Of a DNA stretch of 64,000 nucleotides, positions 1,928 to 55,945 are shown piece after piece. Position 1 is the first letter of the stretch. Each line of letters begins with the position of its first letter. The notes under the pieces were generated by a model that did no database searches, was not told the origin of the DNA, and saw only the letters and a program-made list of their open reading frames with translations. Both the position numbers and the translations under genes were made by a program. The stretch covers positions 208,603 to 272,602 of the IMG/VR virus record IMGVR_UViG_3300026484_000007; one strand, 5' to 3'.

Positions 1928-2575
1928 ATGAAAAAAATTACATTAACTGAAGCATTATCTGAATTAAAATTATACGATAAAAAAATTACTAAAGAAATAT
2001 CAGAATTAAGTAGATCTAAAAGCACAGTCGATTATGTTATAGGTAAAAATAAATTAACTGAAATCAATAAAATGACTGAAGAAGAGTTAAAAGAATATGC
2101 TCAAAGCGCTGTAGATAAATTATTAAATTTAATTAAAAACAGAGGTATTCTTAAAGCAGCAATTGCTAAAGCAAACGCAATTACAACATTAAACGTTAAT
2201 GGAAAAGAATATACTATCGTAGAAGCTATTGAAAGAAAAAATAATATTTATAAAGAAAAAGAAATTTTAAATATTCTTGCAGAAAATTATAACAATGTTG
2301 CTTATAAAGTTTCAAGAATCAATGAAAATGCGAGAGATGAAGTAAATAGATTATTAGAAGCTAAATTATCTAGCGATAGTAAAAATCAATCGTCAGATGA
2401 AATTGAAAAACTATCTCAAGTTCTTTTAGAAGCTAAAGAAGCTAAAATTCTCGATCCATATAAAATCGGAGATTTAATAGTAAAAATGCAAGAAGAAATT
2501 GAAGAGTTCGAAACTAACATCGACGTAGCATTATCAATCGTAAATGCTAAAACAGAAATCGAAGTAGATCTTTAA
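1928..2575 (+). CDS. conserved coiled-coil protein (DIP1984-like family)
   Basis: N-terminal TLTEALSELKLYDKKI, central AIAKANAITTLNVNGKEYTIVEAIERK, C-terminal IDVALSIVNAKTEIEV; strong AAGGAG RBS. Confidence 0.6.
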   Translation: MKKITLTEALSELKLYDKKITKEISELSRSKSTVDYVIGKNKLTEINKMTEEELKEYAQSAVDKLLNLIKNRGILKAAIAKANAITTLNVNGKEYTIVEAIERKNNIYKEKEILNILAENYNNVAYKVSRINENARDEVNRLLEAKLSSDSKNQSSDEIEKLSQVLLEAKEAKILDPYKIGDLIVKMQEEIEEFETNIDVALSIVNAKTEIEVDL

Positions 2576-2600
2576 AAGATCTACTTTTTTTTGTCATTAG
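2562..2600 (+). terminator. intrinsic terminator built on a GATC-N7-GATC palindrome, with TTTTTTGTCATTAG tail
   Basis: AAGTAGATC-TTTAAAA-GATCTACTT hairpin followed by a T run. Confidence 0.7.
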
Positions 2601-2622
2601 AAAAAATTGTAAAGGAGAATAA

Positions 2623-4923
2623 ATGAACGATATTTACGTAATTAAAAGAGATGGAAGAAAAGAAAAATTTCAATTAAGCAAAATAAGAAAACAGATTGAA
2701 TTTGCATGCGCGCCTACTTCAGTAAGTCCTCTTGAAATCGAAAGTCTTTTAAAGATTGATCTTCATAAACCAGATTTAAAAACTTCAGACATTCAAGAAA
2801 TCATTATTGGATCAATTGTAAAAAATATTAATATTGATAATAAAGAGTGGGATTTAATTGCTGGTAGAGCAGCGATGTTTGATCTTTATAGAAACGTTTA
2901 TAAAGTTACAGGTTTTGATCCAAAAGATTGGAGAGAACATATTAAATGGCTTACTGAAAATAATAGATACAGAACTGATATTTTATCTAAATTAGAAAAA
3001 ATGGAGAAAGAAAGAAAATTAGAATTCTTAGATGATCTTTTAGAGAACTTTGTAACTGGAAATTATGATTTTCAAATGGTGTACTCGCAAGTACAAGTTA
3101 TTAAATCTAAGTATCTTTTAAAAAGCAAAAGAAAAATTATTGAATATCCAGTGTTGACTGATATAGTTAATAGTATTATTTTATGCGATGGAACTTATGA
3201 AGATTTTAAAATTCTTTTTGAAATGATTCATAATCAATATATTTCATTAGCGACTCCATTTAAAGCTAATCTTAGAATTCCAAATGGAAGTGTTACATCT
3301 TGTTTTATTGGAGAAAATATCGATAGTCTTGCGGGAATTGCTAAAGCTTGGAAAGATATGGCTAAGATATCTCAAGAAGGTGGAGGAATCGGTTGGGACT
3401 TTTCAAAAATTAGACCAGGAGATTCTTATACTGATAACGTTCCTAAATCAAATACTATCAATAAATGGCTTAAGATAGTTAATGATATTATGGTTGCTGT
3501 TAATCAAAGAGGAATTAGACCAGGAGCTTTAACTCCAGCAATACCTTGGTGGCATTTAGATGTTTTTGATTTTATCGATATGAAATCAGAATTAAATGGA
3601 GATCTTAGAGAAAAATGTTTTGACCTTTTCCCTCAAGTAACTGTAGATAATTATTTTATTGATGCGGTACTTAACGACGAAGAAGTTTATTTATTCGACC
3701 AAAAAGAATATAAAGATTTAACTTGCATCGATATTACTGAGTTAGTCGATGAAAAATTATATGAAACTCATAAACATGTTGAAAAATTAATCAATGAAAA
3801 TAAACTTACTCATTATAAAAAGATTAAAGCTAGAGATCTTTGGAAAAAAATCTTATGGGTATGGGTTGAGATAGGTGATTTTTATATCGCTCATAAAGAC
3901 AATATTAATAAAGCAAATTACTTAAAAAATGATCCTCAAGGAGGGATTACAAAGAATGTTAATCTATGTTGTGAAAGTTATAGTCTTACAAAAGCACCTA
4001 CTCAATGGGCTTCAAAATCAATTAATGATGGTGATAGAGAAATAACAATTGAAACGGATGGTAGATATCATGCTTGTAATCTTTGTAGTATCAATCTTAC
4101 AAATCTTGTAGATAAATCGGAAGAATTTATTAAATTAGTTTCTAAATACGCAGTAATTATTCTTGATAGAGGAATTGATTTAAGTACTTTCCCAGTTCTT
4201 GAAGCTGAATTAAATTCAAAAGAATTAAGAAACATAGGTATCGGATTTGTAGGTATGGCTGATTATATGGCTTATAATAATAAAATGTTTGACACTGAAG
4301 ATGGTCAAAGATTTGCGGAAGCTTTAATCGAAAGATTCTCTTGGTACGTTCATAATACAAGCGTAGAATTAGCTAAAGAAAAAGGATCTTATCCATTATT
4401 CAAACCAGAAAATTATTATAAAATTCTTGGGCATAAACCAGAAGAATTAGAAAATTTTAGTAAAGCAAATGGAAATAATTTCCCTTGGAGACAATTACAA
4501 CAAGATATTTTTGAACATGGAATTAGAAATTTTTATTTATTAAGTCCAGCACCAAACACATCAACTGCGATCTTAAATGGATCAACAGCGAGTTTCTTAC
4601 CAGTATATAATAAAGAAATGTATCAAACAATGAGCAATCAATCAGTTCCTATTATTCCTAAATTTATTAAAGAAAAATTCTGGTTGTATAAAACTAAATT
4701 CGATTATATTCCAAAAGATATCATCAATTATACTAGAAGACTTCAAAGATGGATTGACGCAGGAATTTCATTAGAAATTAATATTAATCCAGCTCTTACG
4801 AATATCAAAGAAATTTCAGATGCTATTCTAGATGGTTTTAAATCTGGAGAGCTTAAAGCAATATATTATTCATTGACAATTGATGGTAAAAAACAAGAAG
4901 GTTGTGTATCATGTGCGAATTAG
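2623..4923 (+). CDS. nrdA: ribonucleoside-diphosphate reductase class Ia alpha subunit
   Basis: ATP-cone start VIKRDGRKEKF, TSCF, GGGIG, NLCCE, CNLCSINL, APNTST, YY pair, C-terminal CVSC. Confidence 0.97.
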   Translation: MNDIYVIKRDGRKEKFQLSKIRKQIEFACAPTSVSPLEIESLLKIDLHKPDLKTSDIQEIIIGSIVKNINIDNKEWDLIAGRAAMFDLYRNVYKVTGFDPKDWREHIKWLTENNRYRTDILSKLEKMEKERKLEFLDDLLENFVTGNYDFQMVYSQVQVIKSKYLLKSKRKIIEYPVLTDIVNSIILCDGTYEDFKILFEMIHNQYISLATPFKANLRIPNGSVTSCFIGENIDSLAGIAKAWKDMAKISQEGGGIGWDFSKIRPGDSYTDNVPKSNTINKWLKIVNDIMVAVNQRGIRPGALTPAIPWWHLDVFDFIDMKSELNGDLREKCFDLFPQVTVDNYFIDAVLNDEEVYLFDQKEYKDLTCIDITELVDEKLYETHKHVEKLINENKLTHYKKIKARDLWKKILWVWVEIGDFYIAHKDNINKANYLKNDPQGGITKNVNLCCESYSLTKAPTQWASKSINDGDREITIETDGRYHACNLCSINLTNLVDKSEEFIKLVSKYAVIILDRGIDLSTFPVLEAELNSKELRNIGIGFVGMADYMAYNNKMFDTEDGQRFAEALIERFSWYVHNTSVELAKEKGSYPLFKPENYYKILGHKPEELENFSKANGNNFPWRQLQQDIFEHGIRNFYLLSPAPNTSTAILNGSTASFLPVYNKEMYQTMSNQSVPIIPKFIKEKFWLYKTKFDYIPKDIINYTRRLQRWIDAGISLEININPALTNIKEISDAILDGFKSGELKAIYYSLTIDGKKQEGCVSCAN

Positions 4924-5216
4924 ACCAAAATGCTAAAAATGAAATCTTAAAAGAAATAAGACAATTAAGGCAAAAATTTGAAGAGGATCTTAGAAATAAA
5001 AGATTCTCTTCGGATATACCAGAGAGATCTTTTGCAGATCAGTTTGAGCAAATTGTCCCACCATTAACATTTTTAATAGTGGTTTTATCTATATTGATTT
5101 TATTCATTGGTGATGTATACAATAAACATCAATTAAATAAATTAATTATCGAAAAAAATTGTAGTCAATTTTTAAATAAGATGCATGAAATAAGAGAAAT
5201 GAAGGAGAAAAAATGA
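4902..5216 (+). CDS. small membrane protein
   Basis: Single hydrophobic segment LTFLIVVLSILILFIG; lies between nrdA and nrdB. Confidence 0.6.
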   Translation: MCIMCELDQNAKNEILKEIRQLRQKFEEDLRNKRFSSDIPERSFADQFEQIVPPLTFLIVVLSILILFIGDVYNKHQLNKLIIEKNCSQFLNKMHEIREMKEKK

Positions 5217-6283
5217 GCCAAATATCAAATCAAGTAAATCATAATTGTAAAGTTAAAAAATTATTTAATCCAGATGTTCAGGATGAACACAAATTATACG
5301 GAGGTTGTACGACAAATACATTAGATCTTGCTAACGTAAAATATCCAGTGTTCGTTGATTGGGTGGATAAACAATACGCAAATAACTGGTTACCTCAAAA
5401 AGTTGATATGACTGGGGATTATAGTCAATACTGGAATGATTTAACAGATGATGAAAGAGTTGCGTTTGATAATATTTTATCTTTCTTAATATTCTTAGAT
5501 AGTATTCAAACGAACAATCTTCCTAATATTGCAGATTATATTACATTACCTGAGGTTGTATATGCATTAGCAAGACAAACATATGACGAAGCAATACATA
5601 GTCGTTCATATGGATTAATATTAAATTTTAATATTAAAGATAAAGCTAAAATAGAAGAAATTACTTATCTTTGGAGAAAAAATAAAATTCTTTTAGAAAG
5701 AAATAAAAAAATTGCAGAGATCTATCAAGACGCAAAAGATAATCATTCTGATCTTAATTTTATCAAAGGTCTTATAGGGAATTTTATGTTAGAAGGAATT
5801 TATTTTTATAATGGATTTCAGTTCTTTCATAATCTTGCATCAAGAGGTCTTATGATTGGAACAGATACTCAAATCAGATATATCCAAAGAGATGAATTAG
5901 GACATTTAAAGCTTTTCGCTGATATTATTAAAATATCGCAAGAAGAAAATCCAGAAATTTGGACAGACGAAGTTAAAGAAATCGTTTACGATATGTTTAG
6001 AGATGCTGTAGATCTTGAAATTAAATTTAGTCAAGATGTTATTGGAGATAAAATTCTTGGAATGAGTTCACAAGCAATCGAAGATTACGCTTATTGGCTT
6101 GGGAATAAAAGACTTAAAGAAATTAAATTAAAACCAATTTTTCCAGAAAGAAAAAATCCTTATTCTCATTTAGAAAAAATTGCTTCTGTCGAAGATGAAA
6201 GTTCAAATAGAACTAATAACTTCGAAAGCACATCAATTACTTATAAATCTCCAGAAATTCTTGATGGATGGGATCAAATTTAA
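5213..6283 (+). CDS. nrdB: ribonucleoside-diphosphate reductase class Ia beta subunit
   Basis: NNWLPQKV, FLDSIQ, EAIHSRSY, LEGIYFYNGF, IQRDELGH, NFESTSITY. Confidence 0.97.
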   Translation: MSQISNQVNHNCKVKKLFNPDVQDEHKLYGGCTTNTLDLANVKYPVFVDWVDKQYANNWLPQKVDMTGDYSQYWNDLTDDERVAFDNILSFLIFLDSIQTNNLPNIADYITLPEVVYALARQTYDEAIHSRSYGLILNFNIKDKAKIEEITYLWRKNKILLERNKKIAEIYQDAKDNHSDLNFIKGLIGNFMLEGIYFYNGFQFFHNLASRGLMIGTDTQIRYIQRDELGHLKLFADIIKISQEENPEIWTDEVKEIVYDMFRDAVDLEIKFSQDVIGDKILGMSSQAIEDYAYWLGNKRLKEIKLKPIFPERKNPYSHLEKIASVEDESSNRTNNFESTSITYKSPEILDGWDQI

Positions 6284-6305
6284 AACCGATTTAAAAAGGA
6301 ATCAA

Positions 6306-6491
6306 ATGTTACTTAAAGAATGTAATGGTTGCAAATATCTAGCTCGATTGATCGGTATAGGTCAAGGAGTTAGATGTACAAATCCAGAAAATCAAATAAC
6401 TGGAATGGATGGATCAAAAGCGATAGTTATATCTCAGATAGAGAATTGTAATTATTATAAGCAACATAAAAAAGATAAGAAAGAATCTTAA
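6306..6491 (+). CDS. small Cys4 (zinc-binding-like) protein
   Basis: AAAGGA RBS before the ATG at 6306; CNGC...C...C pattern. The track's start at 6180 overlaps nrdB and is unlikely. Confidence 0.6.
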   Translation: MLLKECNGCKYLARLIGIGQGVRCTNPENQITGMDGSKAIVISQIENCNYYKQHKKDKKES

Positions 6492-6512
6492 AAGGATCTT
6501 AAAAAGATCCAA

Positions 6513-6540
6513 TTGAAATATTTTTTTTGAAATTTAAGAT
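6513..6540 (+). promoter_or_regulatory. sigma70-like promoter for the large ncRNA
   Basis: TTGAAA-N16-TAAGAT ending about 9 nt before the first strand of the closing helix. Confidence 0.45.
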
Positions 6541-6672
6541 TTTCTTTAACTTTCTTTATCAGGCGATAAAAATCGAATAATCCCGCCTGACTGGAGCGAA
6601 ATACCAGTCACAAAATTATTTTACATGGGTTAAAATAAGGAGATCGCACTGAAGATGCGCTTTTATAATTAC

Positions 6673-6744
6673 ACCAAAAACGAAGGTTCGATTCCTTCCT
6701 TTCCCAACATAATAGGGAAAGTAGCCAAGAGGTAAGGCATTGGT
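6673..6744 (+). tRNA. circularly permuted tRNA-like domain (3' half precedes 5' half, no closed anticodon loop)
   Basis: ACCAA-aaac-GAAGG-TTCGATT-CCTTC-CTTTCCC-A, 8-nt linker, then GGGAAAG-TA-GCC-AAGAGGTAA-GGC-A-TTGGT. All four stems pair perfectly. Confidence 0.8.
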
Positions 6745-6775
6745 TCCAAAATATAAATATATAACAATCGAACGA

Positions 6776-6859
6776 AAAGTTCAAAGTAAAAAATTTAAAA
6801 TTTAATGCTTAAATACTAACTACTAAAAATTAACCTTCAAAATTTAAAATAAAAAGCTT
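6776..6859 (+). repeat. 12 consecutive degenerate 7-nt units, each starting AA
   Basis: aaagttc aaagtaa aaaattt aaaattt aatgctt aaatact aactact aaaaatt aaccttc aaaattt aaaataa aaagctt. Confidence 0.7.
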
Positions 6860-6938
6860 TTTAAAATCTTGGAGGAAGTTTTAAGTGGCGAGGATTAGCC
6901 CGATTTTTGATCCAAGCTGCTTGATAGAGAAAGACTTC

Positions 6939-6976
6939 AAAACCCTCGCATAGTGCGAGGGTTTTTTTGTCGTTAG
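6939..6976 (+). terminator. intrinsic terminator with GTCGTTAG tail
   Basis: AAAACCCTCGCA-TAG-TGCGAGGGTTTTTTT. Confidence 0.9.
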
Positions 6977-7015
6977 AAAAAATTAGATAAAATTAGAAAA
7001 ATAAAAAAATTTTGT

Positions 7016-7110
7016 AAATAAAATCTATGGGGAGCAATGCTCCCCATAGGGGGACTTTGTCCCCCTTGGAGGAGTGGAGACTTTTCGTCTCCACTCCTCT
7101 CTTTCTGCTA
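7016..7110 (-). ncRNA. GC-rich triple-hairpin cassette 1 (putative small RNA; strand uncertain)
   Basis: Hairpins CTATGGGGAGC/GCTCCCCATAG, GGGGGAC/GTCCCCC and GAGGAGTGGAGAC/GTCTCCACTCCTC. Leftward promoter-like motif at 7116-7145. On the - strand the last hairpin is followed by ATTTTATTT. Confidence 0.5.
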
Positions 7111-7115
7111 TTTAT

Positions 7116-7145
7116 ATATCAATTAAAACTAAAGCAGTTCTAAAA
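7116..7145 (-). promoter_or_regulatory. bipartite motif TTTTAGAACT-N14-(A/T)GATAT (putative phage promoter)
   Basis: Same motif and spacing at 7334-7363, 7966-7995 and 8695-8724, the last directly upstream of the only - strand gene. Confidence 0.55.
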
Positions 7146-7166
7146 AATCTCCGTAAATAAAATTAC

Positions 7167-7328
7167 AAATAAAATCTATGGGGAGCATTGCTCCCCATAG
7201 GGGGACTTTGTCCCCCACTCACTGGGGTGGTTGCCCACATTGGCAACGGGAGCAATCCCGCTCATTTGAGCGGGGCCCGACCACCCCGGAGGACTCACCT
7301 CCTTTCTTGGAGTCCTCCTTTTTTGCTA
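7167..7328 (-). ncRNA. GC-rich multi-hairpin cassette 2 with SD/anti-SD loop (putative small RNA; strand uncertain)
   Basis: Shares the two terminal hairpins with cassettes 1 and 3. Extra multibranch domain at 7224-7287. Hairpin 7288-7318 has loop ACCTCCTTTCTTG. Confidence 0.55.
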
Positions 7329-7333
7329 ATTAA

Positions 7334-7363
7334 ATATCTGATAAAACTAAAGCAGTTCTAAAA
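7334..7363 (-). promoter_or_regulatory. TTTTAGAACT-N14-AGATAT motif
   Basis: Copy of the bipartite motif, followed on the - strand by TAGCAAAA. Confidence 0.55.
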
Positions 7364-7442
7364 AATCTTTATAAATAAATTTAAAAAATCTTTTCTAAAA
7401 CAATATATAAATTATCAATTAAAATATATAAGGAGATTAATT

Positions 7443-7727
7443 ATGGCAACTGCTTTTCATAAAGATTACAATGCAGAATACGTAATCGGTGATGACGTTG
7501 TAAATTCTGAAGAAGTAAAAAATACTCAGCCAACTGTATTATCTAAAATTATAGATGGAAAACCAGCTGATGTTAATACCGAAACTAAAGATATGCTAAC
7601 CGAAGAAACTGTATGGTTTAGAAATGACAGAATCAGACAAACTCTTCAAGATCAATACACTGAAGTTTCTAGACAAACTTTTGAAATTGATCAATTTGAA
7701 ACTACTGATTTACCAGGAAATCCATAA
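7443..7727 (+). CDS. hypothetical protein
   Basis: 94 aa, AAGGAG RBS. Confidence 0.75.
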   Translation: MATAFHKDYNAEYVIGDDVVNSEEVKNTQPTVLSKIIDGKPADVNTETKDMLTEETVWFRNDRIRQTLQDQYTEVSRQTFEIDQFETTDLPGNP

Positions 7728-7778
7728 GCAAATATTGCGATGCATGGCGCTAATGGATAACTCGTATATATATCTCAT

Positions 7779-7826
7779 AAAACTCCGGAGTTCTAAAATA
7801 GAGCTCTGGAGTTTTTTTGTCGTTAG
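7779..7826 (+). terminator. intrinsic terminator with GTCGTTAG tail
   Basis: AAAACTCCGGAGTTCT...AGAGCTCTGGAGTTTTTTT. Confidence 0.7.
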
Positions 7827-7865
7827 AAAAAATTAGAAAAAATTAGAAAAAATAAAAAAATTTGC

Positions 7866-7960
7866 AAATAAAATCTATGGGGAGCAATGCTCCCCATAGG
7901 GGGACTTTGTCCCCCTTGGAGGAGTGGGGAATTTTCATCTCCACTCCTCTCTTTCTGCTA
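7866..7960 (-). ncRNA. GC-rich triple-hairpin cassette 3 (near copy of cassette 1)
   Basis: Part of a ~185-bp direct repeat (6961-7145 vs 7811-7995). Confidence 0.5.
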
Positions 7961-7965
7961 TTTAT

Positions 7966-7995
7966 ATATCTAATAAAACTAAAGTAGTTCTAAAA
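7966..7995 (-). promoter_or_regulatory. TTTTAGAACT-N14-AGATAT motif
   Basis: Copy of the bipartite motif. Confidence 0.55.
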
Positions 7996-8042
7996 ATAAT
8001 TAAAAATTAATGCGAAAAAAAGAGACAGAAGCGTCAGTAGGC

Positions 8043-8663
8043 TTAAGCCTCCGATTGATGCTTTTTAAGCAATTTATCGAAGGCTTTCAGATACCTACTA
8101 ATCTTGACAATATACACAATTGTCGCCCCTGAAATTATCCCGAATAGGAGTATAACTCCATTGTCGGGCAACTTCAGGTATGAATAGCCCATTAATAATA
8201 GGGCCACAACCAATTGCACTCTCGAGCGCGCTTTATTCACGTCACTCGAAAACGTCTCCGCCTCTTCTGAATTCAGCAAGACGTTCGTCAAAACTGAATT
8301 CATGTTCGCCTGAACGGCGAACAACAATACATACAGCGGAAAGATCAATACGACGATCTTTGCCGCTAATACTCTATCTATCTCCGGATGGAGATAGAAT
8401 AGGTACACTAGAATGCAGAAATACGCTACATCTAGTGTGCTTAATAACACGAAGCTCGCAAAGTAGCTAATTTTGTGTGTTAGCCACTTATTGAACTCCA
8501 TCATTGTAGCGCTCATTAGACTAATGAACGCGATAAACCCAACCGAGAACTCACCATAAAGGTGAGACTCAAATGGTTGAATTATTTGGAAAGCTAAGCT
8601 TCCCAGAATAACTATCTTTATTCTTAATGTTAAGAATAAAGACTTCAATACTTCCATCTTCAT
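8043..8663 (-). CDS. polytopic membrane protein (about 5-6 TM)
   Basis: AAGGAG RBS on the - strand, several hydrophobic helices, visibly more GC-rich than neighbours. Confidence 0.75.
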   Translation of the reverse strand: MKMEVLKSLFLTLRIKIVILGSLAFQIIQPFESHLYGEFSVGFIAFISLMSATMMEFNKWLTHKISYFASFVLLSTLDVAYFCILVYLFYLHPEIDRVLAAKIVVLIFPLYVLLFAVQANMNSVLTNVLLNSEEAETFSSDVNKARSRVQLVVALLLMGYSYLKLPDNGVILLFGIISGATIVYIVKISRYLKAFDKLLKKHQSEA

Positions 8664-8694
8664 CTTTTCTCCTTTGATTTTTTTGCTATTTTAG

Positions 8695-8724
8695 ATATCT
8701 CATAAGCCTTTACCAGTTCTAAAA
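8695..8724 (-). promoter_or_regulatory. TTTTAGAACT-N14-AGATAT motif upstream of the - strand gene
   Basis: - strand reads TTTTAGAACT ggtaaaggcttatg AGATAT ctaaaaTAGCAAAAAAATCAAAGGAG...ATG. Confidence 0.6.
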
Positions 8725-8824
8725 AAAACTTCGATTTTCTTAACAAAGATTTTCTTAACAAACGAAGAAAATTCATAAGAATAAAATACAAATAAATACA
8801 AAAATATTTAATTAAGGAGTATTA

Positions 8825-46737: not shown

Positions 46738-47046
46738 ATGGGATTAAAAAGATACATCACGATAATGAACGAAGATAATCAAACGAAAACCGTCGGGACA
46801 GATGTTACTGGTTTACTATTTGAAGTTTTCGTGTATAACGATCACGACACAAATGATTCTCGACAACCAACAATAAAATTTTATTTTCAAACAGATGACG
46901 ATTTAGAGATTACTGTTTTTAAAAAGAAATTAGAAGTGAATGAAACTTTTATTTTAAAGCCAGAGATATCGTTAATATCAGATGATTTAAAAATCTACTG
47001 CGATTTAAAAGGAGTTCAAGTAGTAACTCAAGTTCTTCAAAATTAA
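46738..47046 (+). CDS. small beta-rich hypothetical protein
   Basis: 102 aa with RBS. Confidence 0.7.
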   Translation: MGLKRYITIMNEDNQTKTVGTDVTGLLFEVFVYNDHDTNDSRQPTIKFYFQTDDDLEITVFKKKLEVNETFILKPEISLISDDLKIYCDLKGVQVVTQVLQN

Positions 47047-47057
47047 AGGATCGAAAA

Positions 47058-49277: not shown

Positions 49278-49307
49278 ATTTATTTAAACGTAGATCAAAC
49301 GTCATTT

Positions 49308-49345
49308 AAAAGTGATCTTTTTAAGATCACTTTTTTTGTCGTTAG
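49308..49345 (+). terminator. terminator on a GATC palindrome, with GTCGTTAG tail
   Basis: AAAAGTGATCTTTTTAAGATCACTTTTTTT. Confidence 0.7.
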
Positions 49346-49377
49346 AAAAAATCCATAGAAAAGATTATAAAAATTAA

Positions 49378-49515
49378 GAAAAAACAGCGATCCTAAAACG
49401 TTGCGCTTCTATGGATACACAAAGATATATACGAGTTCTAAAGTTTTATAGTTTTAGAACTCGTATATATCCTTAGTATCGAAAAAAGATGCTACTTAGA
49501 AAATCAAAATTTTTC
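49378..49515. repeat. ~140-bp dispersed palindromic element, copy F
   Basis: Same core. Confidence 0.85.
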
Positions 49516-49546
49516 AAGAAAAAAATAAAAAAATAAAGGAAAATAA

Positions 49547-50509
49547 ATGCTAAATGAAATTACTTTATTTATCACAAAAGAATGCAATATGAACTGCGAT
49601 TATTGTACTCAAGAAAATAATAAAGATTCGATAGATGATAATGAATCGCTAGAGTTAACAATCAAAACAATTGAAAGTTTAATCAAAGATAAAAAATTAA
49701 GTTCAAAAACTTCGTGGCATTTTTTTGGAGGAGAACCTACTTTAAAATTCGATAAAATGTTAAAATTATATAAGTATTTAAAAACTCAAGGCTTTAAAAA
49801 TTTTAAATTATTTACTAATGGATTAATAAAAGAATCTTTTTTAGATCACATTCCAAATGATATAATGATTTCGATATCCTACGATGGATTGTCTCAGAAA
49901 AATCGATCTTCAAAAGATCGTGATAAAATTATTAATAATATTAAATATTTAATTACTAAAAATAATTTTGAAAAAATAAATTTCATTTATGATGAATTTT
50001 TATTAAAAAATTATTTTTTTATTAGTGATCTTTTAAAGATCCCTGAGTGGAAAATTACACATAGTTTAAATAGAAATTTTTATTGGTGGACTCCAGAAAG
50101 AATTGAAAAATATTTAACCGAATTTAATGCTTTAGCAGAATATAATTTTTTTGCAAATATATATAGAAAAAATAAAGATATCGAAGATATATATTTTATG
50201 TATTTTCAAAATATATTTAATCAATCAAAAAGATCGATTTTAGGATGTGGGCTTAAAGATTCTCGAATAAGTATATATCCAGATGGATCTATCAAAAATT
50301 GCGGAATTAGATCATTTAATGAAGATGATTATGTTTCTCAAAAAGAGATTGAATCTTTTTGTAAAAATTGTGAAGCTTATAAATTCTGCGATAAAAAATG
50401 CCCTATCGAAATGAAAAAATTTCCAGAGCTTTTTCAATATTCTTTTTGTGAAATAAAAATAAATGAAATTAAAACGCTTGAAAAATATTTTAAAAAGGAA
50501 CTTAAATGA
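49547..50509 (+). CDS. radical SAM protein with SPASM-type C-terminus
   Basis: CNMNCDYC, FFGGEP, TNG, SYDG; CG...C...CKNC..FCDKKCP. Confidence 0.9.
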   Translation: MLNEITLFITKECNMNCDYCTQENNKDSIDDNESLELTIKTIESLIKDKKLSSKTSWHFFGGEPTLKFDKMLKLYKYLKTQGFKNFKLFTNGLIKESFLDHIPNDIMISISYDGLSQKNRSSKDRDKIINNIKYLITKNNFEKINFIYDEFLLKNYFFISDLLKIPEWKITHSLNRNFYWWTPERIEKYLTEFNALAEYNFFANIYRKNKDIEDIYFMYFQNIFNQSKRSILGCGLKDSRISIYPDGSIKNCGIRSFNEDDYVSQKEIESFCKNCEAYKFCDKKCPIEMKKFPELFQYSFCEIKINEIKTLEKYFKKELK

Positions 50510-50916
50510 ATTCAGAACTTATCTTATACAAGTATCTTATTACAGATAAAATACGATCTTTAAAAGATCTTTTTAATCTTAATCCAGATGAAAAATTAAT
50601 TTATGCAATAGATAATTTATTAGAGAGCGCTATTCTTTTTGAATCTTTAAATGATTCAAAACTAGAAAAAATTTCAGAAGAATTATTTAATCTTCATGAA
50701 AGATTATATTCGGAAATAGAAAATATAGTTCATAAAAAATTCCAAAATGAATTATTAAATGAAAAAATTATTAAAGAAAAGCAAGAGTACTACGAAGAGA
50801 TCTTAAAAAGATCACAAACTGATTTAGACAAAAAAGAATATGAAGATATCGAATCTCTCGAATTTCAATTGAAAAAGGATATAAGAAAGGATACAAGAAA
50901 GGATACTAAAAAATGA
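50506..50916 (+). CDS. hypothetical helical protein
   Basis: Translationally coupled to both neighbours. Confidence 0.7.
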   Translation: MNSELILYKYLITDKIRSLKDLFNLNPDEKLIYAIDNLLESAILFESLNDSKLEKISEELFNLHERLYSEIENIVHKKFQNELLNEKIIKEKQEYYEEILKRSQTDLDKKEYEDIESLEFQLKKDIRKDTRKDTKK

Positions 50917-52100
50917 AAGAAGCATCAAAAAATACAATAGAAAACACGGTAGTGATCGATTTAATTACTAATAAAGATTGCAATATGAATTGCAAGTATT
51001 GCTTTGAGCAAGGACATTTTAAGAATACTCAGCTAACCGAAGAAACAATAAATAATATTTTTAATTATATTAAATTATTAAAAGAAAAAGATCCTTCGGT
51101 AAATTTTGAATTTATTTTAATTGGTGGAGAACCGAGCATCGCAAAAAATTTAAATTTATTTTTAGAAAAATTGAAAACCTTAGACGAAAAGGATCTAAAA
51201 AAGATCACTTATATGACAAATGGATTATCAAAAGAAAAAATTGAAAATCATTTAAATCAAATAAATAATCTAATTGATCCTAAAAAGATCGAACTTCAAA
51301 TTTCTTATGATGGAAAAGGTTTTCATGATAAAAATAGATTATTTAAACAACAAGGGAATTTAATTCCTACAAGTGCTATTATAAAAGAGAATATCGATTA
51401 TTTTTATAATTCTGGTAAATGTTATGTTACTATAAAAAGTACAATAACTTATCAAGATTTATTAGATAAAGGATCTTTATTAGATACATTAAACGATTTT
51501 GAAGAATTAAATGAAAAATACCATATATTATATTCCGTTTCAGAAGACAAAACATCGTTCGAAATTCCTGAGAATTTATTTAAAAATAATTTAAATAAAT
51601 TATTAGAATCGTTATTGATCTTAGAAAGATTCGAAAAAGATTTCTTTAAAAAGAAAGGATATTTTTTGACTAAATGGTTTAATGGTGCTAGTTATAGAGC
51701 AGATAATAAAACTTGTGGTATGGGAAATAAAATTATTAGTTTTTCTCCAACGGGAGATGCAATGGCTTGCCATGCAATTGAATACTACGACACTAATGAA
51801 TCTAAAAAAGATCTTTTATACGGAAATATCAATCAAGACTCTTTAGATAGCATTTATGAAAATTTTGAAAGAATTAAAAAAGAAATCAATAATAATAAAT
51901 ACAACCAATGCATAGATTGCAAAACTTTATATTGTAGCAAATGTCCAGCATACACTTTCGAATCTTTAAAAGATCTAAAAAAGATCTATACTGGATCTAA
52001 ATTAAATAATCAAAATTTATGCAACTTTTTTAATTTATTAAGCATAAATATTTATAGAGTTTATAAAGAATTAAATATTCTTGATAAGCTGAAAAAATAA
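50913..52100 (+). CDS. radical SAM/SPASM protein
   Basis: CNMNCKYC, IGGEP, TNG, ISYDG; CGMG...ACH...CIDC...CSKCP...C. Confidence 0.92.
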   Translation: MKEASKNTIENTVVIDLITNKDCNMNCKYCFEQGHFKNTQLTEETINNIFNYIKLLKEKDPSVNFEFILIGGEPSIAKNLNLFLEKLKTLDEKDLKKITYMTNGLSKEKIENHLNQINNLIDPKKIELQISYDGKGFHDKNRLFKQQGNLIPTSAIIKENIDYFYNSGKCYVTIKSTITYQDLLDKGSLLDTLNDFEELNEKYHILYSVSEDKTSFEIPENLFKNNLNKLLESLLILERFEKDFFKKKGYFLTKWFNGASYRADNKTCGMGNKIISFSPTGDAMACHAIEYYDTNESKKDLLYGNINQDSLDSIYENFERIKKEINNNKYNQCIDCKTLYCSKCPAYTFESLKDLKKIYTGSKLNNQNLCNFFNLLSINIYRVYKELNILDKLKK

Positions 52101-52112
52101 AAAGGAGAAATT

Positions 52113-52682
52113 ATGGCTAAGTGTACGTGCGAAGTGATTAGTGCGTGTTCTTCCACTTGGAACTCAAAGTATTGTAGTACAGTTTGTGCATGTAATGACG
52201 TTACATCTTGTTATGACGATTGTAGCGCTTATCTTTCGACATCTCAAGCTAGAGACGATTTTGATAGCACTAAAGAAGATGAGGTTAATACTGCTAGAGA
52301 TAATTTTAAAGGTAAAAAAGTAATTAAAATTTCCGATTTAAAAGCAATTCGAAAATATTTGAATGATATTGCTAAAAGTAAAAAAGATAGTTCTATCACA
52401 ATAGATGAATTAGATAAAAGTAAAGGAGATACCGTTGAAGCAGCTGACGCAGATGATCCAAGAAAAACTAGTTTAAAAATTGGCCTTTTATCTGGAGTAA
52501 ACGCTGCGAGCGCAACATATGATCTTGGAAATATGGGAGAAATTGAATCAGAAGACATCATTGATGGATCGCAATTAAAAACTATAGCCGAATCAATTGT
52601 TGATATAGCTTTATCATGCAGATGTGTTGGTTATTCAGCACAAACTTGTAATGATCAATGTGTTTGCGATTGTAATTATTAA
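52113..52682 (+). CDS. Cys-rich protein, candidate radical-SAM substrate / tail-tip component
   Basis: 8 Cys in the first 37 aa and 6 Cys in the last 21 aa (CVCDCNY end). Confidence 0.6.
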   Translation: MAKCTCEVISACSSTWNSKYCSTVCACNDVTSCYDDCSAYLSTSQARDDFDSTKEDEVNTARDNFKGKKVIKISDLKAIRKYLNDIAKSKKDSSITIDELDKSKGDTVEAADADDPRKTSLKIGLLSGVNAASATYDLGNMGEIESEDIIDGSQLKTIAESIVDIALSCRCVGYSAQTCNDQCVCDCNY

Positions 52683-52729
52683 AAAATTATTAAAATTATT
52701 AAATTTAAATTTATTAAAAAGGAGAAAAT

Positions 52730-53521
52730 ATGTATTATACTTATGTATTTATGAAAAAAGTTTCAGACAATTATTATCAACCGATATCAATAGATAGAGT
52801 TTTTCAAACAGTAGCACCATTCTTAAAATTAGATAATTTTGATTTAGCAGCAAGAATTGATGATCAAGCAATTCGATTAATAGAATATGCGTGGAAGAAT
52901 AAAGAATTTCCTTTAATAAAAGCAGATTATGGAGATATGGTTAGCGTCGACAAAATCATTGTTTTTTCAATGGAAGAATTCAGAAAAGAAATTCTCGCGA
53001 CTAGAAATCCTAATAAATTAAAAGGTAAAACAATTGAAGAGCTATTCGACGATGAAGATTTAAAAAATGAATATCTTTTTGAAAAAAGAAAAGAAGAAAT
53101 TCTTAAAGAGATTCTTAATCAATTCTTCCCAATGTTTAACGTTTGGGATTTAATGAATATGATTAAATATTTAGAATACTGGGGAATTTTATTTAATGAA
53201 GGAATTGTAATTTCTGAAAAAAATAAAGAAGACAAATTCATCGAAATCATTGAAAAAGACGATGATTATCTTTTAGAGATCCTTGAAAAATTCTTAGAAG
53301 CAAAAGAAAGATTTGATAAATTCAATAAAAGTTATTCAGTATATAATAATTTAATTCAAGAGATGGATGAAGTTATGTATTGGGATTTTGATACTTTCGA
53401 AGAAGCTATAGGCACTCTTGATAAAATAAGAAATACATATGTAGCACCAGAAAATTATACTTGGGATAGCGATCTTTATTTATTTAGAAAAATAAGAAAG
53501 GAATATCTTGATAAAAAATAA
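52730..53521 (+). CDS. hypothetical protein
   Basis: 263 aa, AAGGAG RBS. Confidence 0.75.
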   Translation: MYYTYVFMKKVSDNYYQPISIDRVFQTVAPFLKLDNFDLAARIDDQAIRLIEYAWKNKEFPLIKADYGDMVSVDKIIVFSMEEFRKEILATRNPNKLKGKTIEELFDDEDLKNEYLFEKRKEEILKEILNQFFPMFNVWDLMNMIKYLEYWGILFNEGIVISEKNKEDKFIEIIEKDDDYLLEILEKFLEAKERFDKFNKSYSVYNNLIQEMDEVMYWDFDTFEEAIGTLDKIRNTYVAPENYTWDSDLYLFRKIRKEYLDKK

Positions 53522-54377
53522 AAAGGATCGTAAGACTCATTATCATATAATCCTTTCGGATTATTGTGATCGAAGCTGTCCTTATTGTATAAATTCTTCG
53601 GATCAAAATGAGATCATATCAAAAGACGATTACGATTTAATTTTAAAAGAATTAAAAAAAGTTATTACAACAGATGATCTGCAAAAGATCGTTATCGAAT
53701 TTAATGGAGGGGAATTTACTTTAATAAAAAATATTGAATGGTATTTTGAAAGATTATCTTTTATTTTTCAAGATCTATCTAAAAGTGATCTAAAAAAGAT
53801 ACAAATAATACTTACTACGAATTTCATAGCAGAAAATATTATTTATAATAATATTTATGATCACTTGAGATCTTTTTTAGATCATGATCAAATATGGTTT
53901 TGGGTAAGCACGCACTATGATTATACTGAAGAAAATTATATTCAAAAATTAAAAGATTTTTTAAGTTATCATAAAATTAAAAATAATAAAATAAATTACT
54001 GGTTTAACACATTAACCGTTTCGAAAAAACATAATAAATACATTAATGATCTTAGAAAGATCGCAAAAGAAAAATTAAAAGAATTATTTGATTTTCATAA
54101 CATTATTTTTAGTACTTCCAATTTAATTCCAGTTTCTTCGCTGAAAAAGAATATATATTGGTATGACACCAAACCTAAATTATGCTCGGGAAATATTTAT
54201 TTAATTATGTATAAAGGAGTGAGCAATTATTGTAAAGAAGAATTTTTTTCTTTCAATGAGATCTTTAAAAGATACGAACAGGATAATCAAGGTAATCGAA
54301 GTATACTTTGTAAGAAATCCTGCACCGATCAAAAATTTGATGAAGAATTATTTAAGCCTAAATATTTAAAAAAATAA
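53508..54377 (+). CDS. radical SAM protein
   Basis: CDRSCPYC, NGGEF, TTN. Confidence 0.85.
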   Translation: MIKNKKDRKTHYHIILSDYCDRSCPYCINSSDQNEIISKDDYDLILKELKKVITTDDLQKIVIEFNGGEFTLIKNIEWYFERLSFIFQDLSKSDLKKIQIILTTNFIAENIIYNNIYDHLRSFLDHDQIWFWVSTHYDYTEENYIQKLKDFLSYHKIKNNKINYWFNTLTVSKKHNKYINDLRKIAKEKLKELFDFHNIIFSTSNLIPVSSLKKNIYWYDTKPKLCSGNIYLIMYKGVSNYCKEEFFSFNEIFKRYEQDNQGNRSILCKKSCTDQKFDEELFKPKYLKK

Positions 54378-54423
54378 TTAAAATAATTAAAATAATAAAA
54401 ATAATAAAAAGCAAGGGAAATTA

Positions 54424-55191
54424 ATGCAATATGTATATTATAGACTCGACCCTAAATATTTACAAGAAAAATATAAATTAGAAAGTACTCTTCAAGATTT
54501 TTTTTATGGATATCAAACGTTTATAAATCCAGAAAAGAAATACATAATTAAAAACATTCCTCCATTAATCAATCAAGATAAAGACGGCTATTTTTATTTT
54601 TGGAATAAATTTTTATCGTTATTTTCATATGCTAGCGATCATCATCGATTTACTTCGCAAGATATATATATTGATCACGATGTTTTTTTATTTAATTTGC
54701 CTTCCAAAGATACCGAGAATTCCAATAATTTTTATTATACTTATGGGATTTATAATAGCACTAATAAAGTTAGTGCAGCTTGTTTTTCTTTAAAAAAATT
54801 TGAAGATTTTAAATATTATTTTAAAGTTTTTTTTAGTTGTAATGATTATATTAGAAAGAAGCCAGAAAAATTCGAAGAATTTTTATTAACAGAGTGGATA
54901 AAATCATTCATGTCCGACAAAAATTCTGAAAAATTAAAGAAAAAAATCATAAAGTTTTCAGAAAATAAGATAACGTTAGAAAAGCAAAAAACCTTTAAAA
55001 ATTTTATACTACATTATCAGACAAATTTTTTATATCAATTTATTATAAAAAATAAAGATAGTATTAAAATATTTTTAAAAGAAAAATTTTATATTAAAAC
55101 ATTACATGATCTTTTAAAGATCCTTAAAGATCTTGAAAAGATTTATAAGGATTTAAAAAATGAAAAAATATCAAAAAGTTATTTTTTATAA
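54424..55191 (+). CDS. DxD-motif (GT-A-like) protein, paralog of 56135-56761
   Basis: RLDPKY..KY and YIDHD shared with the paralog. Confidence 0.45.
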   Translation: MQYVYYRLDPKYLQEKYKLESTLQDFFYGYQTFINPEKKYIIKNIPPLINQDKDGYFYFWNKFLSLFSYASDHHRFTSQDIYIDHDVFLFNLPSKDTENSNNFYYTYGIYNSTNKVSAACFSLKKFEDFKYYFKVFFSCNDYIRKKPEKFEEFLLTEWIKSFMSDKNSEKLKKKIIKFSENKITLEKQKTFKNFILHYQTNFLYQFIIKNKDSIKIFLKEKFYIKTLHDLLKILKDLEKIYKDLKNEKISKSYFL

Positions 55192-55945
55192 ATTAAATTT
55201 TTTCAATGGTAATCTTTTTTACGCATTTGAATATTTTGAATATCTACGAAAAAATAATTGGAAATTAATAATAGATTTAAATGGATCTTTAAAAGATCCA
55301 TTTAAACTTCCAATAAATAAAAAAATTTTATTTGAAGCGTTTCGAGAAAAATACAGTAAAAAATATCATAATTTATTTACTGAAATTATTTTCTTGAAAC
55401 CTTCAACTTTTTTTGTCGCCGATAAAATCCTTGTATTAGATCAAACCAGCATAAAATATTTAAATAAAACATTCGTGTCTAAAAAGATTATTTATAATTA
55501 TGGAGACGATGAGCGATCTTTAAAAGATCCTTTGAATAATAAAAATAATAAAAATAATAAAAATATTATTACGATAGGAGATAAAGATATCGGTTGTAAA
55601 ATTCAATATCATTATCCATTAAAATTAAATTTTAAAATCTTAAAACGTTTAAATTATAAAAGGATCCAAAAAAGATCCTTTTTGGAAAATAAAACAAAAA
55701 ACATCTATGAAAGAAAAAGAAATGTTAAAGATTTTCATTATACTTTCGATACTTTAATTTATAAAAAAGAAAATTTCTGGGAAAGAGCAAATCGATTAAT
55801 TCCAGAATGTAAATTTTATAATAAAGAAATAATATTTGAAAATAAAGATAAAAGAATTGATAGCGCAAATCTTCGCTATCAATCGTCGTGGAAAGATTAT
55901 AGTTTATATCATAGTGATTTTAAAGATTTCGTGGAAAATCTTTGA
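55160..55945 (+). CDS. glycosyltransferase-like (GT-B?) protein, paralog of 59644-60579
   Basis: GNLFYAFEY, AFREKY and RLIPECKFYNKEI shared with the paralog. Confidence 0.4.
   Translation: MKKYQKVIFYKLNFFNGNLFYAFEYFEYLRKNNWKLIIDLNGSLKDPFKLPINKKILFEAFREKYSKKYHNLFTEIIFLKPSTFFVADKILVLDQTSIKYLNKTFVSKKIIYNYGDDERSLKDPLNNKNNKNNKNIITIGDKDIGCKIQYHYPLKLNFKILKRLNYKRIQKRSFLENKTKNIYERKRNVKDFHYTFDTLIYKKENFWERANRLIPECKFYNKEIIFENKDKRIDSANLRYQSSWKDYSLYHSDFKDFVENL

Follow-up and report, generated by a model that had tools for sequence, protein, structure and literature searches.

An uncultured giant phage from a hydrothermal vent carries one short bipartite DNA palindrome, with the core ATC-N7-GAT, about every 600 bases of its 272.6-kb genome, within genes, in terminator-like hairpins and at promoter-like cassettes. 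This density is best explained, although only tentatively and from sequence alone, as a site for an unidentified symmetric DNA-binding protein, while a methylation signal is not supported. The analysis started from a window of 64,000 nucleotides of this genome, where a sequence-only reading had noticed a repeated GATC-N7-GATC palindrome. That observation is real, whereas the interpretation attached to it, either a site for a dimeric phage protein or a methylation-dependent signal analogous to paired GATC binding by SeqA, is only partly supported.

Occurrence and selection at the DNA level

All 29 positions listed in the sequence-only reading are exact GATC-N7-GATC matches within +/-1 base. The window holds 60 exact matches, against 0.87 +/- 0.95 (maximum 3) in dinucleotide-preserving shuffles; the first lies at 639, outside the span of 2567-55677 originally given, the last lies at 55663-55677, and none is found from 55678 to 64000. 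The extent of the sites in the window and the motif-free tail are as follows.

639..55677, no strand given: span of the 60 exact sites and of 110 sites of the relaxed form G.?ATC-N7-GAT.?C; 49 exact sites are genic and 11 are non-genic or at a gene boundary, while by a crude ORF map the 110 relaxed sites split into 89 genic, 9 non-genic long hairpins, 7-8 in promoter-like cassettes and 4 other.
55997..64000, no strand given: motif-free tail, with GC of about 20%, rich in radical-SAM genes, with no exact site and background levels of the core.

Genome-wide (272,602 bp), 248 GATC pairs occur at a start-to-start spacing of 11, while every other spacing from 4 to 60 has 2-25 pairs, spacings 10 and 12 being at background. 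Enrichment of the N7 spacing over codon-preserving shuffles had been named beforehand as the test of the observation, and it holds: genic pairs number 190, against 31.1 +/- 4.2 after synonymous-codon shuffling and 2.1 +/- 1.5 after permutation of codons within genes, so that both codon choice and protein sequence have been bent to the DNA word. No other spacing comes near this, although spacings 21/22 are mildly raised because of three-unit arrays. Genome-wide, the genic sites use all three reading frames (89/62/39), and the peptides DLKKI, DLLKI, (G/R)SLKDP and GSKKDP are present, in support of the claim that selection acts on the DNA independently of frame. A repeat selected at the peptide level is thus rejected, as different peptides are used in the three frames and the synonymous shuffle alone removes five sixths of the sites. 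Enrichment of GATC as such is likewise rejected, as 1429 genic GATC minus 380 in pairs is about equal to the 1042 expected.

Anatomy of the word

Three points of the sequence-only description need correction: the selected core is ATC-N7-GAT rather than GATC as such, the spacer is T(n)A(7-n) with a T-to-A polarity, and besides genes and terminators the word sits in a promoter-like cassette of roughly 150 nt that had not been described. The word is usually written A-nn-G-ATC-T-(T/A)5-A-GAT-C-nn-T, and the extended form AGTGATCT-N5-AGATCACT occurs 7 times in the window. The GAATC/GATTC variants reported by the sequence-only reading are real and enriched. The outer G may sit at -1 or -2 (GATC or GNATC, such as GAATC, GTATC and GCATC), and the relaxed form has 466 sites in the genome, against 6-28 at other spacers. 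Tolerated single mismatches fall only on the outer G/C, are symmetric on the sense and antisense strands and show no G.U-wobble bias. The position weight matrix is symmetric, with A at -3 and T at +17, T at +4 and A at +10, and invariant ATC/GAT. Such a two-fold-symmetric consensus with conserved base identities and a fixed half-site distance of one helical turn fits an operator or site of a symmetric dimeric DNA-binding protein. However, the freedom of the G between -1 and -2 is unusual for rigid base readout, and A6/T6 spacers are far commoner than independent half-site preferences predict.

In genic sites the bases at -3/+17 and the inner T/A are conserved as identities without base-pair covariation, the observed complementarity being equal to the independence expectation (outer pair 3, 93 against 91.8; inner pair 1, 119 against 119.9). 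Of the 190 genic sites, 115 have no extension beyond GATC, positions are spread evenly along genes, and one typical bare genic site folded at only -3.9 kcal/mol (z -0.4). Genic copies therefore lack the features of intrinsic terminators.

Sites also form arrays of 3-5 units with an exact 11-bp period inside ORFs. Tandem duplication as the origin of these arrays is rejected, as it would shift the reading frame, and they must have been built by substitution. Overlapping 11-bp arrays would, however, make two dimers share one central unit. Distances between sites show a weak helical-phase signal at about 10.9-11 bp, and distances of 12-60 bp are depleted. Arrays in the window include the following.

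10751..10776, no strand given: three-unit array (GAATC-N7-GATC-N7-GATC) inside ORF 10273-10974.
18753..18778, no strand given: three-unit array inside ORF 17742-19397, which holds 7 exact sites in 1.6 kb.
51962..51997, no strand given: four-unit array (GAATC-N7-GATC-N7-GATC-N7-GATC) inside ORF 50913-52100.

In the portal alignment, sites are made by conservative substitutions (N to D, L to I and x to K) at non-homologous positions, as the sites of the closest relative, L007, lie elsewhere. This bears on a non-adaptive spread, in which a mutational or gene-conversion bias (for example templated correction of quasi-palindromes), or copying from the abundant hairpins, would generate the word without function in genes. 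The non-genic hairpins could act as conversion donors, and the motif-free, lower-GC tail, with one gene 63% identical to a relative, looks like un-ameliorated DNA. However, palindrome correction does not favour one specific triplet or one spacer length, the sites are built by scattered point substitutions with amino-acid changes, there is no flanking similarity among genic sites beyond the 21-bp consensus, and 11-bp arrays sit inside intact ORFs. Non-adaptive spread is thus considered very unlikely.

Terminator-like hairpins

The use of the word in terminators, as claimed by the sequence-only reading, is confirmed at the level of sequence and predicted folding for the non-genic subset only, termination itself being inferred. 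Outer pairs are complementary in 48 of 58 non-genic sites against 21 expected, folding energies are -14 to -28 kcal/mol (z -5 to -7), and the terminator scan calls such hairpins terminator-like (30 against 6.2 and 14 against 4.5 expected), with the conserved tail TTTTTGTCGTTA. The copies in the window include the following.

2561..2587, plus strand: terminator-like hairpin built on the motif (GAAGTAGATCTTTAAAAGATCTACTTT followed by a T-run), just after the ORF ending at 2575.
13120..13144, plus strand: terminator-like hairpin AGAGTGATCTTTTTTAGATCACTCT at the stop of the RNAP-beta-like ORF 11774-13126 (-15.2 kcal/mol, z -5.1).
17459..17489, plus strand: terminator-like hairpin TTAAAAGTGATCTAAAAAAGATCACTTTTAA followed by T8, after ORF 16693-17445 (-15.3 kcal/mol, z -5.8).
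38397..38423, no strand given: hairpin AAAAAGGATCTTTTTTAGATCCTTTTT between ORFs 36730-38181 and 38454-39032.
46617..46666, plus strand: two tandem AGTGATCTTTTTTAGATCACT hairpins at the stop of ORF 43709-46621 (-28.1 kcal/mol, z -7.1).
49308..49334, plus strand: terminator-like hairpin AAAAGTGATCTTTTTAAGATCACTTTT with the conserved tail TTTGTCGTTA, after ORF 47058-49277 (-14.4 kcal/mol, z -5.5).

These hairpins raise the possibility that every copy, including the genic ones, works as a small hairpin in RNA or single-stranded DNA (stem GAUCU/AGAUC, A5 or U5 loop), recognised by a phage RNA-binding or hairpin-binding factor for termination, antitermination in the manner of boxB, mRNA processing or stabilisation, or priming. 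In agreement with this, the lower stems of non-genic copies carry compensatory changes, the loops are orientation-biased in terminators (U-rich in sense, 20 against 6) and in cassettes, which a pure dsDNA site does not predict, and the cassette copy GUAUCUAAAAAAGAUGC pairs with a G.U wobble only in the sense orientation and sits where a 5' leader hairpin would be. The 5-bp stem with an A-rich pentaloop also resembles lambda boxB. However, genic sites show no covariation at any flanking or inner pair, weak folding and no wobble-tolerant mismatch pattern, ATC/GAT identity is fixed although any complementary triplet would pair, and the would-be closing pair varies without compensation in the cassettes of the focal phage and of its relative L005. 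A general structural signal is thus regarded as unlikely, although a structural role exists for a fifth of the sites and cannot be fully excluded for the rest.

Promoter-like cassettes and related phages

The genome contains about 29 copies of a palindromic promoter-like cassette of roughly 150 nt with two divergent arms, whose promoter function is inferred from sequence alone. It has a long, highly conserved AT-rich element (TATATATC), with the motif starting about 5-7 nt downstream. Several copies lie 39-115 nt before start codons, while some face away from the neighbouring genes. Copies in the window, all with approximate boundaries, include the following.

13186..13334, plus strand: cassette copy (GCATCGAAAAAAGATGC, core at 13280).
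17548..17697, plus strand: cassette copy with a central hairpin AGCAGTTCTAAAAATTTTAGAACTGCT, called in the terminator scan, then TATATCGCTT, then GTATCTAAAAAAGATGC (motif core at 17643-17655).
26759..26908, plus strand: cassette copy (GTATCCAAAATAGATGC, core at 26854).
41493..41809, plus strand: two tandem cassette copies (motif cores at 41588 and 41755), upstream of ORF 41893-43599.
49384..49532, plus strand: cassette copy (GTATCGAAAAAAGATGC, core at 49478), directly upstream of the radical-SAM gene 49547-50509.
55917..56066, minus strand: inverted cassette copy, marking the boundary between motif-rich DNA and the motif-free tail.

In the relatives L005/L061 and L063 the word occurs in intergenic cassettes only, as inverted arms around AT-rich TATA-like cores, while the focal phage, and apparently its closest relative L007, spread it into genes. 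Within cassettes ATC/GAT is invariant.

Beyond these relatives, the 21-mer AGTGATCTW5AGATCACT gave no viral contig, only the phage's own contig had multiple hits in metagenomes, and 185,579 genomes yielded 10 single, chance-level hits. A search of IMG/VR with the portal protein alone found no relative, and megablast of a 4.5-kb ORF against GenBank phages found nothing. DNA sequencing runs X2 to X5 hold partial sets (0.58 to 0.23) of the 31-mers sampled from window positions 41000-47000. In the window, no Rfam family reached the gathering score and no tRNAs were found.

Methylation, modification and candidate binding proteins

Family searches of the 97%-complete phage genome for Dam, N6_N4 and N6 methylases, HsdM, HsdS, HU/IHF, MutH, SeqA and TGT were negative (PF02086, PF05869, PF01555, PF02384, PF01420, PF00216, PF02976, PF03925 and PF01702). 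The methylation-dependent, SeqA-like reading is thus not supported. More than half of the sites are two GATCs one helical turn apart on the same face, and a Dam of the unknown host cannot be excluded. However, 218 of the 466 relaxed sites have at least one half that is not GATC, GNATC halves are positively selected, single GATC is at expectation, and the spacing is rigid at 11 bp rather than tolerant in helical multiples. In addition, SeqA is confined to some Gammaproteobacteria, an unlikely host group for a 27% GC vent phage. This reading is considered largely refuted.

The word might also be the target of a bipartite-specificity DNA-modifying or restriction-type enzyme, such as a Type-I-like methylase with a symmetric half-HsdS or a dimeric base-exchange enzyme of the phage's 7-deazaguanine pathway, and would then be a self-mark rather than a passive binding site. 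A 3-bp + N7 + 3-bp palindrome has the geometry of Type I targets, and the phage encodes FolE, QueD, a QueE-like radical SAM, two QueC copies and a DpdC-type DUF6884 (PMC11888242). TGT/DpdA enzymes act as dimers, and distant DpdA3 forms escape standard models (PMC6884629; 10.1101/2023.04.13.536721). However, besides the negative domain searches, DpdA3-type phages modify all G and not a motif (10.1101/2023.04.13.536721), modification targets need not be enriched, and restriction targets are normally avoided. This explanation is thus unlikely.

A Chi-like or nuclease- or recombination-modulating word is also unlikely. Each copy would give a small protective or recombinogenic effect against a host or phage helicase-nuclease and, being palindromic, would work from either end of a linear, permuted genome. 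The density and even dispersal resemble Chi or USS-type words whose benefit adds up per copy, and the phage encodes a non-specific nuclease, a Rad50/SbcC-like ATPase and a RecJ-like nuclease. However, known Chi sites are short, contiguous and asymmetric, and a rigid 3+7+3 word with an A/T-only spacer and promoter-cassette ancestry fits a duplex-binding regulator better.

As to the binder itself, none was identified in Pfam-level screens, which found only two weak small HTH ORFs (P0037 and P0038) that are not claimed as the binder.

Interpretation

The word most likely serves as the binding site of a rigid, two-fold-symmetric (dimeric) sequence-specific DNA-binding protein made by the phage, although confidence in this remains below even. 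Each half of the protein would read one ATC/GAT half-site, in successive major grooves on one face of the helix, across an A/T-only spacer. The word is old in this phage sub-clade as an arm of intergenic promoter cassettes, an operator-like position, and in the focal phage, and apparently in its closest relative, it has been written by point substitutions through the whole genome. That suggests that the putative binder has acquired a genome-wide, dose-dependent role, such as coating or compacting, marking, or protecting phage DNA. Because the word is self-complementary, it also seeds the stems of many intrinsic terminators. The enrichment, the anatomy, the three contexts and the phylogenetic distribution rest directly on the analysis, while it is inferred that a protein binds, that it is dimeric and phage-encoded, and what it does.

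A further, unlikely but not excluded possibility is that a giant phage has turned an ancestral promoter operator into a genome-wide 'self' code, with hundreds of phased binding sites for one phage protein written through its genes. That protein would coat, compact or tag the probably 7-deazaguanine-modified phage chromosome, for example to tell it apart from host DNA during nuclease attack, replication or packaging, and this would be the first viral counterpart of USS, Chi or Noc-type genomic words.

Genome-wide selected words (USS/DUS, Chi, KOPS, Noc, SlmA and MatP sites) are known from bacterial chromosomes and reveal machines that read whole replicons, while a literature search found no description of a comparable word in a phage. 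Here the word is dense enough to have altered protein sequences throughout a 272-kb genome, and it can be traced from a promoter-cassette element in relatives to a genome-wide element in one lineage. If a protein reads it, that protein is a handle on how a giant phage organises, marks or protects its chromosome, and the word is a ready-made bait for finding it. The motif, the cassette and the terminator consensus also give a first transcription map, inferred from sequence, for an uncultured vent phage clade.

Comparison with known systems

SeqA binding to paired hemimethylated GATC shares with over half of the phage sites two GATCs on one face of the helix, but in the phage GATC is not required, the spacing is rigid, and no Dam or SeqA was detected in its genome. 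Operators of dimeric or tetrameric phage repressors (434, P22 Arc/Mnt and similar) share a two-fold-symmetric site with half-sites one helical turn apart, an A/T-rich non-contacted spacer, and a position flanking or overlapping promoter cores, as in the cassettes. They occur a few times per genome and outside genes, however, while this word has about 470-670 copies, four fifths of them inside ORFs, and no repressor homologue was identified.

Chromosome-organising palindromic sites (Noc NBS, SlmA SBS, MatP matS, ParB parS) are 12-16-bp palindromes bound by dimeric HTH proteins, scattered through genes, and marking or organising a replicon. They number tens per megabase, whereas this word has about 1.7 per kilobase, in a phage, and no ParB, Noc or SlmA-type protein turned up in the Pfam screens, in which those families were not searched by name.

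Early (virion-RNAP) promoters of AR9/phiKZ-type jumbo phages and PeSL cassettes of T4-type phages resemble the 29-copy cassette in its long, conserved AT-rich element, with the motif starting about 5-7 nt downstream where in AR9 the transcription start lies 6 nt downstream of AAATATATATTAT (PMC5312081), in copy number (34-41 in AR9), and in combining a promoter and a stem-loop between genes, the promoter of the present cassette being putative. The sequence is unrelated, and the cassette is a 150-nt palindrome with two divergent arms.

REP/BIME elements occur as hundreds of copies of a small palindrome, some acting as terminators or protein-binding sites. REPs are strictly extragenic and spread by RAYT transposases, whereas about 80% of the present sites are intragenic and the word is built by substitution; no transposase family appeared in the Pfam screens, in which RAYT was not searched by name.

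DNA uptake sequences (Haemophilus USS, Neisseria DUS) are likewise short words kept at roughly one copy per kilobase by DNA-level selection, present in genes in all frames, where they shape peptides, and reused as inverted repeats in transcription terminators. USS and DUS are asymmetric contiguous words in bacterial chromosomes, read by the competence machinery, while the present word is a bipartite palindrome in a virus, with promoter-cassette ancestry and no link to uptake.

Genomic context of the window

The window occupies the last 64 kb (208,603-272,602) of a single 272,602-bp viral contig, Ga0256837_1000001, which is classed by IMG/VR as linear and 97% complete, originates from a hydrothermal-vent metagenome and has a GC content of 27%. 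The contig belongs to a jumbo phage with split multisubunit RNA-polymerase genes, of which the beta-like ORF 19419-22538 is 22% identical to those of Staphylococcus phage S6, Yersinia phage phiR1-37 and Bacillus phage PBS1, and it also encodes a T4-type portal and both ribonucleotide reductase subunits. Metagenomes hold a large clade of relatives with contigs up to about 290 kb, none of which is closer than 62-69% protein identity.

Two further regions of the window were noted. The ORF-poor stretch 6491-8825 may be a cluster of small RNAs, as it holds a 186-nt direct repeat (6961-7146 and 7811-7996), three copies of CTATGGGGAGCATTGCTCCCCATAGGGGGACTTTGTCCCCC, and a tRNA or tmRNA-like T-arm piece at 6680-6749 (beta_tmRNA partial match, E 2e-4, below gathering score), although ARAGORN finds no tRNA. 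The region 49547-61622 contains at least five radical-SAM genes, one with a SPASM domain, and one further radical-SAM hit was obtained among the other window ORFs. These genes follow the structural genes, and the cluster is conserved in the relatives L001, L003 and L005 (L denotes contigs of related phages). The five genes are as follows:
49547-50509, radical-SAM gene
50913-52100, radical-SAM gene
53508-54377, radical-SAM gene
56751-57845, radical-SAM gene
60618-61622, radical-SAM gene

Enrichment of the paired word

The iterated GATC-N7-GATC palindrome described in the sequence-only reading is real, and all of the coordinates listed for it were correct within one base. The word occurs 60 times in the window, against 0.87 +/- 0.95 in dinucleotide-preserving shuffles, and 248 times genome-wide, where among all GATC-GATC spacings from 4 to 60, spacing 11 has 248 pairs and every other spacing has 2-25. 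Of the 248 sites, 190 lie inside ORFs, in all three frames (89/62/39) and evenly along gene length, while 58 are intergenic or at gene boundaries, although only 9% of the genome is non-coding; these gene calls come from a crude longest-ORF map, thus a few sites called genic near ORF starts are really intergenic. The comparison with shuffled controls, which had been set beforehand as a test that could refute the observation, fails to refute it, as genic pairs number 190 against 31.1 +/- 4.2 when synonymous codons are shuffled within genes and 2.1 +/- 1.5 when whole codons are permuted, so both codon choice and amino-acid sequence have been shaped. Single GATC is not itself selected, since the 1429 genic GATCs minus the 380 in pairs roughly equals the 1042 expected.

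Conserved core and arrays

The selected word is not GATC, a finding that counts against the rival Dam/SeqA reading. One-mismatch variants are enriched only at the outermost G and C, symmetrically and with no preference for G.U-compatible changes, while mismatches in the inner ATC...GAT are at or below background. ATC-N7-GAT occurs 671 times, against about 155 at other spacers, and when the base before ATC is not G, the base before that is G in over 80% of the excess half-sites (GAATC, GTATC, GCATC). The relaxed form G.?ATC-N7-GAT.?C has 466 sites genome-wide, against 6-28 at spacers 4-10, and 110 sites in the window, against 0-8. The consensus is a 21-bp palindrome, A-nn-GATC-T-(W5)-A-GATC-nn-T, where the spacer is almost always T(n)A(7-n), with T6A and TA6 as the commonest forms and A-to-T order virtually absent.

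Twenty-six pairs of sites overlap at exactly 11 bp, giving arrays of three to five units with an 11-bp period inside intact ORFs, for example:
window 51962-51997, array within an ORF
genome 81,305-81,340, array in a Rad50/SMC-like gene

An 11-bp tandem duplication would break the reading frame, so these arrays were assembled by substitution. Otherwise, sites avoid separations of 12-60 bp, and inter-site distances carry a weak periodicity of about 10.9-11 bp.

Genic sites

About 80% of the sites are genic, and these are bare, as 115 of 190 have no complementary extension beyond GATC. Complementarity at flanking and inner positions equals the independence expectation, apart from a small excess at the first outer pair (75 against 53.6), and a typical bare genic site folds at only -3.9 kcal/mol (z -0.4). 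What is conserved is base identity (A at -3, T at +17, T at +4, A at +10), not pairing, which counts against the rival reading of the word as an RNA or ssDNA hairpin signal.

Non-genic hairpins

In non-genic hairpins the motif caps long stems such as AAAAGTGATCT-W5-AGATCACTTTT, which show clear compensatory variation (GT/AC, AG/CT, GA/TC, GC/GC), with outer pairs complementary in 48 of 58 sites against 21 expected. The five tested fold at -14 to -28 kcal/mol (z -5 to -7). Most of those after genes lie within about 60 nt of the stop codon, many carry a conserved tail TTTTTGTCGTTA, and the hairpins are called by the terminator scan (30 found against 6.2 expected; 14 against 4.5). By our own tally, their loops are U-rich in the sense orientation in 20 cases against 6.

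Terminator hairpins of different stem sequence share the tail TTTTT(TT)GTCGTTAGAAAAA, which suggests a sequence-specific part of the termination signal, or an adjacent conserved element. The tail is found at many sites genome-wide and, in the window, at:
2588-2597, shared tail
41472-41481, shared tail
49335-49344, shared tail

Outside the window, four tandem 28-bp repeats, each a hairpin AAAGGATCTAAAAAAGATCCTTT, lie at genome 89,055-89,175 between two minus-strand genes of unknown function (87,292-89,022 and 89,181-90,932), and may be a quadruple terminator or an operator or centromere-like array.

Putative promoter cassettes

The third context, overlooked in the sequence-only reading, is a conserved cassette of about 150 nt present in about 29 copies genome-wide. 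It is an imperfect palindrome centred on a hairpin AGCAGTTCTAAAA(A)TTTTAGAACTGCT with arms TATATATC-N4/5-GTATCTAAAAAAGATGCTAC..., where the better-conserved arm reads TATAT(A)TC-GCTT-GTATCTAAAAAAGATGC-TAC... and the A-rich spacer always lies in that arm's own orientation. The copies in the window, with approximate boundaries, are:
13186-13334, one copy
17548-17697, one copy
26759-26908, one copy
41493-41809, two copies in tandem before ORF 41893-43599
49384-49532, one copy
55917-56066, minus strand, one copy

Several copies lie 39-115 nt upstream of start codons, while some face away from the neighbouring genes. In AR9, the early virion-RNAP promoter is AAATATATATTAT-N6-G(+1) (PMC5312081), and by analogy the cassette is provisionally read as a divergent early-type (virion RNAP) promoter pair, with transcription inferred to start at or next to the motif and with a predicted two-hairpin 5' leader.

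Distribution among relatives

Relatives at 55-62% identity carry the same core only in intergenic cassettes, as inverted arms around AT-rich TATA-like centres, while their genes are at background. L005 and L061 have (C)AATC-N-AAAAT-N-GATT(G), whereas L063 has GGATC-W7-GATCTCA flanking GAGAGTATAAT, and the L063 core contains a sigma-70-like TATAAT. These cassettes, which show that the word predates its genic expansion, are located at:
L063, 6060-6415 and 2260-2400
L005, 1-300 and 9550-9900
L061, 11100-11330

A 46%-identity relative, L062, has nothing. The closest relative, L007 (69% portal identity, only 4.9 kb available), has 11 ATC-N7-GAT against about 2 at other spacers, two of them inside the portal gene. 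In the portal alignment the focal sites and the L007 sites are at different positions, and the focal sites were made by conservative replacements (N to D, L to I, x to K) or lie in a small insertion, which counts against the rival possibility of non-adaptive spread.

The last 8 kb of the genome (window 55997-64000; genome 264.6-272.6 kb) has no site and about 20% GC, and an inverted promoter-like cassette marks its boundary. Its ORF 56751-57845 is 63% identical to L005, whereas its neighbours are 30-45% identical, suggesting recent exchange with, or import from, a motif-less relative. The word is therefore an old cis-element of the clade's putative promoter cassettes, which one lineage has spread through its coding sequence. 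Outside this contig, the extended 21-mer is not iterated anywhere in the viral, metagenome or genome collections searched.

Candidate readers of the word

Family searches of the phage genome found no Dam, other N6 or N4 methylase, HsdM, HsdS, MutH, SeqA, HU/IHF or TGT/DpdA, results that count against the Dam/SeqA reading and against a further rival, a bipartite modification target. Pfam screens of essentially all ORFs showed many replication and repair functions, namely type II topoisomerase, B-family polymerase, SNF2 helicase, Rad50-like ATPase, RecJ-like nuclease, endonuclease VII, a non-specific nuclease and an actin-like (ALP_N/MreB-like) ATPase. Only two weak small HTH proteins (ORFs P0037 and P0038) turned up, and no binder can be named.

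By Pfam, the region 79-209 kb of the genome, outside the window, holds a dense anti-defence and repair repertoire, comprising Cas_csx3 ring-nuclease-like, Tad2-like, Apyc1-like, NADAR and NAMPT/NAPRTase plus NUDIX (NAD salvage) domains, T4 RNA ligase with a PNK-like RNA repair set, the actin-like ATPase and the type II topoisomerase. The same region encodes a complete 7-deazaguanine (preQ0/ADG-type) pathway with FolE, QueD, a QueE-like radical SAM, two QueC copies, a DpdC-type DUF6884 (PMC11888242; G000:C1:91274-91690 (-) on the phage contig) and Q_salvage, and ThyX is present. Phages with this gene set, such as Campylobacter phage CP220, replace all G with a 7-deazaguanine through a very divergent DpdA3 (PMC6884629; 10.1101/2023.04.13.536721). 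The DNA is thus probably heavily 7-deazaguanine-modified, with the G's of the word probably modified like every other G, which would also explain why GATC need not be avoided.

Interpretation and comparison with known words

The features that define the genic majority, namely fixed identities without covariation, strict two-fold symmetry, a rigid one-turn distance, an A/T-only spacer and independence from strand and frame, point to duplex recognition by a symmetric protein, while the ancestry in promoter-like cassettes points to a regulator or operator origin. The density, the even spread and the per-site cost in amino-acid changes point to a function whose benefit adds up per copy along the genome; a Chi-like word remains among the rivals. 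DNA-level selection itself is regarded as near certain, whereas recognition by a symmetric protein is inferred from sequence and is held only tentatively, as several points argue against it or remain unexplained: the alternative of G at -1 or -2, the excess of A6/T6 spacers, the overlapping arrays that share a central unit, the orientation bias of terminator loops and the absence of an identified binder. The interpretation offered in the sequence-only reading, a site for a dimeric phage protein or a methylation-dependent signal analogous to SeqA binding, is accordingly supported in part, the former being the tentatively preferred reading and the latter a rival that is not supported. Because the word is self-complementary, it is a natural seed for terminator stems, which parallels the use of inverted USS/DUS pairs as terminators.
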